Positions 20,594-23,450 are shown, counted from the stretch's first letter. The stretch: 48,840 bases of DNA from Octopus bimaculoides (GCF_001194135.2 NC_068982.1:7114253-7163092); one strand, 5' to 3'. Numbers and translations: made by a program. Notes: a model not told the origin generated them from the letters alone.

Positions 20594-20916
20594 GTCATCA
20601 TCATCATCATCATCATCATCATCATCATCATCATCATCATCATCATCATCAGCAGCAGCAGCAGCAGCAGCAGCAGCAGCAGCAGTGGCGTCAACAACAA
20701 CAACGGCTGTAAATGCTTCCGCATTTCTAATTTCGAACATTCGAACATCTTATTTTGTCTTTGCATAAAAATCGGTGAGATTTTCTTGTTATTGCAATTA
20801 ATGATACTCTTCTTAAACTACTACTACTACTACTACTACTACTACTACTACTACTACTACTACTACTAATAATAATAATAATAATAATAATAATAATAAT
20901 AATAATAATAATAATA
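20594..20916 (+). repeat. Compound trinucleotide microsatellites (CAT)n(CAG)n and (CTA)n(AAT)n
   Basis: Directly visible; the (AAT)n tract abuts the PLE 3' end. Confidence 0.95.
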
Positions 20917-20987
20917 TTTTTAAAAGGATTGGCGTAACTCTTCATGAAGGTAAACAGTCAAGACGAAGAGCGCGATTCGATTGTAAT
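20916..20987 (-). repeat. 3' copy of PLE terminal direct repeat (pseudo-LTR-like)
   Basis: cgtaactcttcatgaaggtaaacagtcaagacgaagagcgcgattcgattgtaat vs cgtaactcttcacaaaggtaaacagtcaagacgaagagtgtgattagattgtaat at 23396-23450. Confidence 0.85.
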
Positions 20988-21270
20988 AACTATTTTATTG
21001 GTTGAACAGTTATTCTGTTTTGTCAAGTTCAAAACAAGAAATAATAAAAATTCAAAATTATAGGTATGTAAATTTAAAGTATGAACGAGAGTAACCAGCG
21101 TCCACACGTTGATGGAATGACATCAACAGTCTACAAGTTTGAATTTTATAACAGGCGAGAAGAAAAAGACAGAAAAAAGACAGATAGAAAGAGGAAAAAA
21201 AAGACAGAAAAAAGAAAAGGAGAAAGAAGAATATTTAATCAATCAGTATTGTATAAATTTGATGATATTC

Positions 21271-21865
21271 TCATATCATTTTATTCAGTCCTCCAGGGCG
21301 TGATGTTAATAACCCGCAAACATATTTCTCCTCATGCATTCTGAGAAGTGAAAATGTAGCAGATTCAGAATATTTTCTGAGAATACTCACTTTCAAGTCT
21401 TTTTCAAAATTGCAGCCATTTGAAATGAAATGTTCAGCAAGTTCTGTTCGAACTACTGTTATTGTGCCTGACGTCGAATCTGTGCCCATTAAACCTTTTG
21501 TTTAATTGTTCTGTTGTACAACCAACATAAATCAAAATGTGTTTCGTGCATTCTGCCGCGTACACCAAATGGGAATCTCTACATGTCCCACCTTCTGTAT
21601 ATATCATAACATTTCTGTCATGATTCCTAATGGAATTCACTTGACTCATGTTGTTGCACCATGAACAAGACTTACCTCTCTTGCGGCTGTTTTTCAAGGT
21701 ACAGCGTGTAGATACTCCAATGTTCGTTTTCTTGGAGTCACAAATAGAAGTCAATAACTCTCTTATATTCTTATTCCGTCTAAAGTCTACAATAGTTGGC
21801 TGAGAAAATATTTGTTTGAAGCGAGGATACTTTTTCGCCACATATTGGTAACTTTCATGCAACAC
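21271..21865 (-). pseudogene. GIY-YIG endonuclease of the PLE (frameshift near 21480)
   Basis: ORFs 21434-21865 and 21271-21489: LVYAAECTKHILIYVGCTTEQLNKRFNGHR...ELAEHF...DLKVSIL...HEEKY...TSRPGGLN. The VY/YVG motif and the conserved R, H, E and N positions are present. Confidence 0.9.
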
Positions 21866-22210
21866 TTTTGAAAAGCCAGCGAAATTTCAGTGCCAGTTAA
21901 TCACTAAAGGAATTCTGTCATCTATTGTATTGTGTTTGCTAAAATTATCCGTGAAGGTTTTTCTATCTTTCGTAATCTTAGTTATTTCATTTACTATTTG
22001 CTTTAATCATGATTCTCTGTAACCACGTTTGACATAATGATGTACAAAAGCATTTGTATGTTTACAGTAATCCCTTATGTCAGTACAAATCAATTTAATC
22101 CTACAAAATTGGGATTTCAAATTTGACCGAATAATATGATGTGGATGATCGGAGCGACGGTGGAGATAAATGTGGGATGACTTGGGCTTGAAAAATAACA
22201 CTGTCACTAT
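21866..22210 (-). pseudogene. C-terminal thumb region of a PLE reverse transcriptase
   Basis: LFFKPKSSHIYLHRRSDHPHHIIRSNLKSQFCRIKLICTDIRDY...KRGY matches the PLE pattern LY.KPT...YLH..S.HP....SQ..R...IC...RGY. One stop at 22007-22009. Confidence 0.8.
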
Positions 22211-22695
22211 TTGAAAAACTTTTACTTTCGAGAAAGGAACAAATTTATTGTTTTCGAGGCAAAATCTTAAATGTGCTCGCATTTTTGACTGATCAAATAA
22301 AAACGTCTCTGGTCCGTTTCCAAATACCAGTTCAAACGCATACGCCAGAGCAAAAAGGCCACAATCATATGCGCCAACTTGGAGATTAATTATATGAACT
22401 TGTTGAATTGTAGGAATAATGTTTGTTTGTGGTGAATACAACATTGTTATTTGTGATATTAATTCTTGCGAAACTAGTAAGTTCAAACTGTCATGAATAA
22501 AACATCTCCGAAAAAATTGGTCGACAAAACAAAATGATTATCCCTGGCGTGATGAATGAACAATGTGCTGTGTACTGCATGTTAGAAATTCCGTGTGAGA
22601 AAAAATGGTTGGTTGTATTGGAATTTCCGGAAAATTTTCCGCTACGGCATCAATGAGTTTATCACATAATATTTGTCCCGAAAGTAAAAACGATT
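22211..22695 (-). pseudogene. Ulp1/SENP-like (C48-type) cysteine protease domain, two compensating frameshifts
   Basis: LSGQILCDKLIDAVAENFPEI...LFIHHARDNHFVLST...IHDSLN...QVGAYDCGLFALAYAFEL...FDQSKMRAHLRFCLENNKFVPF. Triad His at 22534-22536, Asp at 22490-22492, Cys at 22361-22363, with Gln six residues before the Cys. Confidence 0.8.
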
Positions 22696-23168
22696 TTCAT
22701 ATTTCAAAGCAAATATTCTCAACCCAAATCTTCTCTTACCCACTGGCTCAAAGGAATGGGAAATTAGTTTTTTCAGCTTCTTTTCTTTTTTTGTCTTCAG
22801 GGCCGAAATTTCCAATTTTTCACAGTTCTTCAAACAGTTACACAAATAGTTCAAACGACTTTTAAAACACCTTTTCAAGGACACTCTAAATCTCCTTAAT
22901 GGCAATATTAATTTTGAACGGTAGTGTTCAATAATAGCCTCTATTATGTTAAATGAATTGCTCTCATTAATTAATTAAAACTTTTGAAGCAATGAATCGT
23001 CAGGCTTTCATGCACACATTGGTATATTTGATGTAAGACCGTCCTGTATAACTTTTTCTTGTTTGCATGTTTCCAGAAATGATAAATGGCTCTTGATTTT
23101 AGCACGAAAACTGATATAAATGTCGATTTCTCAATTTCTGATTCATATTTGAATGGTACAAAATCCAT

Positions 23169-23198
23169 TGGCCCAGGATTGTGCTCAACACTAGGGTC
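23169..23198 (-). other. 2A/StopGo-like peptide motif DPSVEHNPG|P at the end of a hydrophobic leader
   Basis: In-frame translation ...KIRIGSC...YSFYVLFFLTVGL*ALLVSLDPSVEHNPGP-MDFVP. The consensus is D(V/I)ExNPGP; here S replaces D. One stop at 23217-23219. Confidence 0.6.
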
Positions 23199-23375
23199 TA
23201 GAGAAACTAACAGGGCTTACAAGCCAACTGTAAGAAAGAATAAAACGTAAAAGCTATAATTTGCATTGCGATTTTCATTAGACACCTGGCTGCTTTGGTA
23301 ACATCCAGAATTTCTACATGATCCAATTCTTATTTTCTCTACCATAAAACCAATCATCTCAATCCACTCGATTTT

Positions 23376-23450
23376 GATATTTTAAAAACTATTGACGTAA
23401 CTCTTCACAAAGGTAAACAGTCAAGACGAAGAGTGTGATTAGATTGTAAT
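23376..23450 (-). repeat. 5' copy of PLE terminal direct repeat (pseudo-LTR-like)
   Basis: Direct repeat of 20916-20987; contains an ACTCTTC...GAAGAGT stem. Confidence 0.85.

Follow-up and report, generated by a model that had tools for sequence, protein, structure and literature searches.

Introduction

For the canonical Penelope-like elements (PLEs), those with a C-terminal endonuclease (EN+), the reference is reportedly Arkhipova's account of 2006. PLEs show an insertion bias for microsatellites (PMC8557442). Accessory domains of the kind considered here have been described in other mobile elements: Ulp1-like proteases lie N-terminal to the reverse transcriptase (RT) in the NeSL and Utopia-1_TSP elements, which are of the non-LTR (long terminal repeat) type (PMC4640811), C48 peptidases occur in some Cryptons (PMC3212892), and a Josephin-like motif is found in Chlamys-1_cBra, a PLE of Chara, and in Dualen non-LTR elements (PMC8557442). 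Similarly, 2A-like sequences, for which the signature is GD(V/I)ExNPGP (PMC3708506), are known near the N-termini of open reading frames (ORFs) of APE-type non-LTR elements (Odon et al. 2013, PMC3708506; Roulston et al. 2016, PMC4981915). Here we analyse a unit at positions 20914-23450, with its coding sense on the minus strand, in a 48,840-nt (48.8-kb) stretch of Octopus bimaculoides DNA (the window, whose positions are used throughout). An initial annotation had read the unit as an RT-less PLE in which a Ulp1-like protease is fused to the RT thumb and a GIY-YIG endonuclease. We conclude, with a probability of roughly 85%, that it is an old, non-functional and internally deleted copy of a C-terminal-endonuclease PLE from a lineage, referred to as 2A-Ulp1, that encodes a 2A-type leader and a Ulp1-like protease ahead of its RT.

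Results

Full-length relatives of the unit

A search with the stitched translation of the unit returned two classes of match, one resembling the thumb, linker and GIY-YIG (35-44% identity, some with RVT_1) and the other resembling the protease part alone. An exhaustive search of 1.84 billion representatives with a protease-domain profile gave 5709 matches at E<=1e-3, of which 47 reached E<=1e-30. The longer relatives combining Ulp1, RT and GIY-YIG, for which the initial annotation had recommended a search, were indeed present: at least 11 representatives of 980-1461 amino acids (aa; 50% clustering) have the Ulp1-like domain at around residues 185-480; an MDDLxxYRxRIG-type leader is present in nine of these 11 and [IV]ExNPGP in ten. 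RVT_1 (~740-1120) and/or GIY-YIG (~1120-1350) was called by Pfam in all seven of the long relatives scanned, and both in three. Their modules follow in the order leader, [IV]ExNPGP, SHRYFL..C..IPKGL, coiled coil, protease, S/P/T-rich linker, PLE N motifs, RT, thumb and GIY-YIG. Furthermore, the genomic loci L001, L002, L004 and L005, which are large eukaryotic contigs, encode Ulp1-like, DUF8422, RT, HTH_animal and GIY-YIG domains serially, and the protease, RT and GIY-YIG share one uninterrupted ORF in at least seven divergent proteins. The parent is a single ORF of ~1200-1460 aa comprising a leader, a 2A-type sequence, a coiled-coil module, the protease, a Ser/Pro/Thr-rich linker, DUF8422, RT fingers/palm, thumb, linker and GIY-YIG. 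Judged from these sequences, the protease belongs to the PLE and not to a foreign transposon.

The closest relative on the protease side, P0003 (70-72% identical), opens ...SLDPSVEPNPGPMDF... and runs through the protease to ...NKFVPFPKVKVFQ, after which it reads MSTKTTEV...NRFRVLSED...VINLSKLKLSRDDVSVLELGLSFCPS, the last stretch being the N-terminal motif region found ahead of the RT in PLEs. P0010, at 39% identity, has the same layout, and P0011, a UniRef entry from Octopus bimaculoides to which UniProt's automatic annotation gives the name 'Ubiquitin-like protease family profile domain-containing protein', is 77% identical to the window protease. The ~150 aa of the unit that had been annotated as of unknown nature proved to be the conserved N-terminal module of the lineage (SHLSFLETC..GL plus a coiled-coil-like part), alignable to P0010 and P0030.

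P0003 is without a ~100-aa coiled-coil-like segment (IIEAIIEHY...KKLKKL) between the SHLSFLETC motif and the protease (alignment A1), a segment kept by the window copy (22970-22700) and by the distant relatives P0010 and P0030. This gap represents either a further in-frame internal length variant or a splice form.

The deletion junction

Within ORF 22007-22486 the protease is joined to the thumb without stop or frameshift, ...ENNKFVPFSKVKVFQ being followed directly by IVTVLFFKPKSSHIYLH..., just as the initial annotation had described; the residues on either side of the join are ...FVPFSKVKVFQ and IVTVLFF..., and the VPFSKVKV of the former is similar at the protein level to VDFLDVKI in RT motif 7. 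When the window was aligned with P0030 by tblastn, residues 10-97, 97-191 and 237-399 were matched and the alignment then jumped to 952-1187 and 1192-1251. Missing from the window copy are residues ~400-951 of P0030 (~552 residues), which correspond to the linker, the PLE N motifs and the RT fingers/palm. The intact element on contig L003, which carries P0030, is 4394 nt long and the window copy 2463 nt, a gap that fits a loss of ~1.7-1.9 kb; the lost part would begin six residues past the protease domain and reach into the start of the thumb, with the frame presumably kept by chance. The view that the unit leaves no room for RT fingers/palm was upheld, since [YF]xDD is absent from every minus-strand frame of the unit and tblastn with full-length relatives found no RT fingers/palm anywhere in the window.

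All five of the independent close relatives that cover the C-terminus of the protease are of the parental type (P0003, P0011, P0017 and the Logan contigs L007-L009 and L010-L012). The three proteins read ...KVKVFQ MSTK... and continue to the N-terminal motif region given above for P0003, none of them joining the thumb. In L010-L012 the DNA similarity to the window ends at 22214, three bases from the junction, and the contigs run on into the linker and PLE N motifs. No junction-spanning protein was found with the stitched translation in a collection of 5.8 billion sequences, and an exact-sequence look-up showed the junction ORF, with ATG or TTG start, not to be on record. A 22-nt junction probe gave one 24-nt chance match among JGI metagenome contigs, on an unrelated contig of 42% GC, which is uninformative about copy number. 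We infer that the deletion is specific to the window copy or to a low-copy variant. The RT-less architecture proposed for the unit reduces to an ordinary decayed deletion copy, as every full-length relative, and everything else retrieved, has a complete RT between protease and thumb. The best fit, given the parental type of the relatives, is an alternative that the initial annotation had itself mentioned, namely a one-off deletion of the RT from a larger PLE that carries Ulp1.

A partial copy is also present on L003, upstream of the intact P0030 ORF. It includes a 110-nt fragment of the RT region (221-330 versus 3094-3203, 96% identical) and, ~100 nt beyond, a 58-nt terminal repeat (431-488 versus 4825-4882). 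Since the RT fragment stands only ~100 nt from the terminal repeat, this partial copy appears to be internally deleted itself, a hint that template jumps or internal deletions occur often in the 2A-Ulp1 lineage; alternatively, it is an assembly artefact in the metagenome scaffold.

Coding anatomy and decay

The anatomy of the unit was established by three-frame translation and by tblastn with relatives (Table 1). The modules are a hydrophobic leader, a 2A-like sequence, the N-terminal/coiled-coil region, the Ulp1/SENP-like protease, the RT thumb, a Cys linker and GIY-YIG, and the domain reading that had been proposed, with pseudo-LTR-like repeats and no RT, is correct. The ~2.46-kb extent between direct repeats also stood, but the unit is not a near-intact ORF, carrying at least six in-frame stops and at least five frameshifts and having no single open frame. 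The N-terminal module, for example, is disrupted by a frameshift near 23109 and by stops at 23010-23008 and 22977-22975. The copy is dead: it encodes no protein and is without an RT, and it counts as a PLE derivative rather than an autonomous PLE.

The thumb at 22210-22010 is of the PLE type (KPT..YLH..S.HP motif). Thumb and linker, and likewise the whole stretch from thumb to GIY-YIG (22210-21271, tblastn), are 44% identical to the PLE protein P0001. A local Pfam scan of the window fragment and of P0001 gave no PF26215 HTH_animal. GIY-YIG on the frameshifted window fragment scored E 9.7e-4 and 19.8 bits with PF01541, below the cut-off of 22.6, and P0001, which is 44-47% identical to the window GIY-YIG, passes at 34.4 bits. 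Since Pfam did not call Peptidase_C48 on the ORF pieces of the window and GIY-YIG was sub-threshold, both the protease and the endonuclease were assigned through intact relatives. No Rfam family exceeded its gathering score across the window and no hammerhead or other genuine RNA family was found at E<=5 in 20500-24000, the only matches being microsatellite artefacts. Hammerhead ribozymes are not universal in PLEs (PMC8557442).

The protease domain

A 36-sequence profile searched against the PDB matched SENP1, a Ulp1-like SUMO protease, SENP5 and SENP2 (E 2.5e-4 to 2e-3), with the catalytic H/D/Q/C aligned. The domain of P0003, 72% identical to that of the window, was modelled with AlphaFold2 (pLDDT 91.9, pTM 0.88), and the best Foldseek matches to this model were SENP5, SENP1, Ulp1, SENP3 and OtDUB (E 5e-7 to 1e-4, TMq 0.58-0.71), the list extending to SseL, SENP2 and NEDP1 (E to 1e-3, TMq 0.46-0.71). 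All 27 Foldseek matches at E<=1e-3 are SENP/Ulp1/NEDP1 proteases or bacterial clan-CE deubiquitinases, in agreement with a clan-CE fold. On the basis of the predicted structure, the Ulp1/SENP-like call is sound. The C48 assignment that had been suggested is therefore borne out by the profile, AlphaFold2 and Foldseek, and also by the UniProt name of P0011, but not by Pfam on the window fragment. The PF02902 Peptidase_C48 cut-off was passed by the PLE-linked P0013 (24.1 versus 20.7 bits), was reached by P0023, P0024, P0063, P0068 and P0134, and was missed by the window fragment, P0003, P0010, P0011 and P0012.

Across 36 diverse domains no variation is seen at D74, Q111 or C117, and the conservation of H59 is at least 90%, which argues for catalysis being retained in the 2A-Ulp1 lineage, as predicted from the alignment. 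The window copy encodes all four catalytic residues, so that their presence, as initially annotated, holds at the DNA level; however, the segment with the catalytic His (HSTLFIHHARDNHFVLST, 22572-22501) lies in a different frame from those with the Asp (FIHDSLN, 22501-22481) and the Gln and Cys (QVGAYDCG, 22381-22358).

The same Ulp1-like subfamily, recognisable by an FDQSxMRxHL...FP tail, is fused to PHD fingers in P0023, P0024 and P0134, adjoins a YqaJ/alkaline exonuclease in P0109 and sits within polycystin gene models in P0147 and P0167. It would seem that this domain passes between several animal mobile elements or, alternatively, that it has been mis-merged into host gene models.

The 2A-like motif

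The 2A-like residues of the window are S-V-E-H-N-P-G-P, in which the Asp position of the signature (G)D(V/I)ExNPGP is substituted. A hydrophobic leader followed by [IV]ExNPGP is shared by 19 relatives (P0003, P0028-P0031, P0033, P0035, P0037, P0039-P0042, P0044, P0046, P0047, P0054, P0087, P0089 and P0170). The motif mostly has the form DPS[IV]ExNPGP, with Ser in place of the canonical Asp, and in the majority of these proteins it begins around residue 56-68, within an N-terminus of the MDDLxxYRxRIG type. A variant of the 2A-like motif with Gln in place of Asp is still active in one sea-urchin element (PMC3708506).

Boundaries and flanking sequence

A repeat search of the window found that the unit is bounded by direct repeats of 74 nt each, spaced 2463 nt start to start and identical at 65 of 74 positions (88%). 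The nine differences correspond to a Kimura two-parameter (K2P) distance of 0.133, and the insertion is considered old because the repeats have diverged by this 13%. Gapped local alignment of the regions upstream of both repeats showed homology confined to the 74 nt, with no extension beyond; the same approach gave no match between 23451-23560, upstream of the 5' repeat, and the 3' region of the element. The repeat is much shorter than typical pseudo-LTRs (pLTRs). A (TTA)n/(TTG)n array (element orientation) lies ~110 nt upstream of the 5' repeat. The element sits inside a (TAA)n microsatellite and has a short terminal direct repeat, the insertion signature of a PLE, and this combination of repeat and context agrees with the description of PLEs by Craig et al. 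(2021, PMC8557442). Self-BLAST found no second copy of the unit in the window.

In the 3' untranslated region (UTR) of the element a 35-nt tandem pair is present (21159-21228; purine-rich, GAAGAAAAAGACAGAAAAAAGACAGATAGAAAGAG, copies 83% identical). About 200 nt downstream of the element is a (CAT)n(CAG)n trinucleotide array (20572-20712), the source of spurious low-score Rfam matches to sR2 and isrG. Eleven N runs interrupt the window (8869-9479, 10533-11198, 16964-17426, 26465-27182, 34348-34490, 38605-39147, 40675-40874, 45838-46028 and three 10-N gaps), several of those inspected lying within (TA)n- or (TG)n-type simple repeats, and Pfam gave no match in seven other long ORFs. The window is a draft, repeat-rich and gene-poor stretch.

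Table 1. Features of the unit and its immediate flanks, listed in element orientation.
Feature	Position in window	Strand	Basis and remarks
(AAT)n/(CAA)n microsatellite upstream of element in element orientation	23563..23739	no strand	TRF period 3, 59 copies
5' direct repeat, pseudo-LTR-like copy of the element's terminal 74 nt	23377..23450	minus	ends 19 nt before ORF ATG
ORF start and leader MIGFMVEKIRIG..., hydrophobic YVLFFLTVGL	23199..23357	minus	in-frame stop 23219-23217; matches MDDLxxYRxRIG and hydrophobic leader of long relatives
2A-like DPSVEHNPGP	23169..23198	minus	three-frame translation
Conserved N-terminal module: FRAKIKSHLSFLETC..GL motif (23109-23065) and coiled-coil-like IIEAIIEHY...	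22693..23168	minus	tblastn to P0003, P0010, P0030; alignment A1
Ulp1/SENP-like (clan CE, C48-type) protease domain, disrupted	22211..22696	minus	tblastn; fold and catalytic residues from relatives
Internal deletion junction Q/I, between 22211 and 22210	22208..22213	minus	tblastn; in frame
RT thumb (HTH_animal-type) IVTVLFFKPKSSHIYLHRRSDHPHH...HYVKRGYRES	22010..22210	minus	followed by stop 22009-22007; relatives carry precomputed PF26215
RT-EN linker with C-X11-C-X2-C (21703-21656)	21569..22006	minus	stop 21889-21887
GIY-YIG endonuclease, CCHH-type residues LVYAAEC...YVGC...GHRFDVRH	21271..21568	minus	frameshift near 21460; premature stop 21273-21271
3' UTR including purine-rich 35-nt tandem pair	20988..21270	minus	repeat search and sequence inspection
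3' direct repeat, element 3' terminus	20914..20987	minus	directly adjoins microsatellite
(TAC)n(TAA)n microsatellite directly downstream of element	20813..20913	no strand	(TTA)n(GTA)n in element orientation

Discussion

We regard the anatomy of the unit, the mapping of the deletion, the decay, the fold of the protease and the many intact relatives with Ulp1, RT and GIY-YIG as established, and on these we base the interpretation of the unit as a deleted copy. Several points weigh against it. The same junction may be shared by many copies in the host genome, of which database coverage is poor, and the in-frame junction runs almost exactly from domain boundary to domain boundary, which is slightly tidier than one would predict for a random deletion, the frame alone having a chance of ~1 in 3. 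The databases hold no close relative (>50% identity) of the 3' half, and a common parent for both halves is deduced from the similar identity that each shows (41% and 36% to P0030) to one set of distant full-length proteins. A hammerhead ribozyme was found neither in the window at gathering score nor in 20500-24000 at E<=5.

Instead of a single deleted copy, the unit could be a member of an amplified non-autonomous PLE family that is RT-less by design, retains its own GIY-YIG and a deSUMOylase-like domain and is mobilised in trans, as the initial annotation had proposed; the RT would come from autonomous relatives. The unit has both its ends preserved, the 5' repeat and the start of the ORF among them, as would be seen in a complete product of retrotransposition, and the position and frame of the junction would also suit such a family. 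There are precedents in the Chlamys group, namely MRC1 and a copy of Chlamys-3_cRei that is transcribed and carries a deletion of 2.8 kb within its ORF (PMC8557442). The lack of junction copies is weak evidence against such a family given the poor coverage of the host genome. Against it, the 5.8-billion-sequence collection returned no protein spanning the junction, the exact ORF is not on record, and the five close relatives are uniformly parental. Moreover, the window contains a single and heavily decayed copy, from which no selection on a protease-EN protein can be read. We consider this family unlikely. A still broader proposal is distinctly unlikely as a whole: that the window copy descends from an undescribed and widespread PLE lineage whose ORF starts with a 2A-type skipping leader and a catalytically competent Ulp1/SENP-type protease, that this protease would remove SUMO or ubiquitin-like modifiers and so blunt SUMO-dependent transposon silencing, or would process the polyprotein, and that RT-deleted forms would be trans-mobilised parasites keeping protease and endonuclease.

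A different question concerns the 74-nt repeats, which could be a long target-site duplication of host sequence, in which case the unit would measure ~2389 nt and have no pseudo-LTR. At the ends of PLE insertions additional, variable sequence may be present, for example 30-40-bp tails (PMC8557442), and the failure to match 23451-23560 to the 3' region of the element would be in keeping with this. On the other hand, 74 nt would be long for such a duplication, and the intact relative on L003 has a 58-nt repeat with its 5' copy 13 nt before the ATG and its 3' copy abutting (TA)n. Since this distantly related element has a repeat in the same two positions, the repeats are read as encoded by the element, and the comparison argues for a feature of the element rather than a target duplication, which we regard as improbable. 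The last possibility, a chance chimera in which a Ulp1-bearing DNA transposon or host gene fragment came to lie beside a 5'-truncated PLE by nested insertion or rearrangement, is hardly credible and, as a chimera with an unrelated Ulp1 transposon, was rejected as largely refuted, because, even though 5'-truncated PLE copies are common (PMC8557442) and related Ulp1-like domains occur with PHD fingers, YqaJ exonuclease and polycystin models, at least seven divergent proteins have leader-2A, Ulp1-like domain, RT and GIY-YIG in one uninterrupted ORF, the window leader, N-terminal module and protease are collinear with them, and the 74-nt repeats bracket both halves.

For the deleted copy that we favour, the deletion may go back to a template jump of the RT during insertion, to a later genomic deletion or to a transmissible RT-less template, and the stops and frameshifts would have accumulated after it. 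In the intact lineage, the [IV]ExNPGP after the hydrophobic leader would release a ~60-aa peptide co-translationally, by analogy with the 2A-like sequences of APE-type elements (PMC3708506), or it may instead tune protein output (PMC13405545). The clan-CE protease would remove SUMO or ubiquitin-like modifiers from proteins of the element or the host and so help the element to evade silencing or degradation; such deconjugation is probably its role, with self-processing of the polyprotein a possible but more doubtful one. RT and GIY-YIG would insert the element into microsatellites by target priming.

The copy leads to a PLE lineage that is real, widespread and well populated and that adds a 2A-type leader and a Ulp1/SENP-like protease to the ORF for RT and GIY-YIG, and the long representatives of this lineage keep their catalytic residues intact. 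Both accessory modules are unmentioned for PLEs in the searchable literature: no published description linking PLEs with Ulp1/C48 or 2A was found in open sources, with Repbase and subscription journals lying outside the coverage, so that a prior description is possible. Neither PMC3708506 and PMC4981915 nor a 2026 survey of 4,218 eukaryotic 2A-like peptides (PMC13405545) mentions 2A in PLEs. Intact ORFs such as P0030 on L003 are reagents with which it can be tested whether retrotransposons use deconjugation of SUMO or ubiquitin-like modifiers against host control.

Comparison with known systems

The canonical EN+ PLEs (Penelope/Poseidon, Neptune and Nematis; PMC8557442) resemble the window lineage in having a single ORF with PLE N motifs, RT, thumb and a CCHH GIY-YIG (seen here in the relatives), as well as a partial-tandem or pseudo-LTR-like terminal repeat, microsatellite insertion and frequent truncated or deleted copies. 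Unlike them, the window lineage has a 2A-type leader and a Ulp1/SENP-like protease before the PLE N motifs, and in the window copy no hammerhead ribozyme was detected and the RT fingers/palm are missing. The window linker (C-X11-CxxC) resembles the CX2-5CxxC of Neptune and Nematis (PMC8557442) without matching it, and the Cys motif is absent in P0030-type relatives. MRC1 and the deleted Chlamys-3_cRei copy (PMC8557442) share with the window copy the retention of both ends and terminal repeats and a deletion inside the ORF; they are, however, green-algal Chlamys elements, and the window copy is without evidence of amplification or transcription.

With respect to the protease, the cellular enzymes SENP1/2/3/5, Ulp1, NEDP1, OtDUB and SseL are alike in fold (Foldseek probability 1.0, TMq 0.58-0.71) and in the His-Asp-Cys triad with its oxyanion Gln. 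The domain described here differs from SENP/Ulp1 proteases in its low identity to them (12-18%), its compact size (~165 aa) and a family-specific FDQSxMRxHLxxCLE...FP helix at the end. Compared by module and position, NeSL and Utopia likewise place a Ulp1-like protease N-terminal to the RT in a retrotransposon ORF, but they have a restriction-like endonuclease, a non-LTR RT, nematode hosts and no 2A leader. Chlamys-1_cBra and Dualen also carry a deubiquitinase-type cysteine protease as an accessory domain, for which interference with protein degradation is the proposed role; in Chlamys-1_cBra, however, the fold is Josephin and not clan CE/C48, the domain is a C-terminal extension with weak homology, and the element is a plant-lineage PLE with an N-terminal EN.

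The leader finds its closest parallel in the APE-type non-LTR elements (PMC3708506, PMC4981915), which have [IV]ExNPGP within about the first 150 residues of a single long ORF, occur in marine invertebrates including molluscs, and carry '2A-like signal sequences' in which a hydrophobic N-terminal leader precedes the 2A-like motif. Here the motif is in a PLE, most members have Ser instead of the canonical Asp ahead of V/I (DPS[IV]ExNPGP), and 2A activity is predicted. Taken together, the parallels with the NeSL/Utopia protease and with the APE-type 2A leaders suggest, by analogy, that unrelated classes of retrotransposon have repeatedly and convergently recruited the same two devices, a 2A leader and a Ulp1-like protease.

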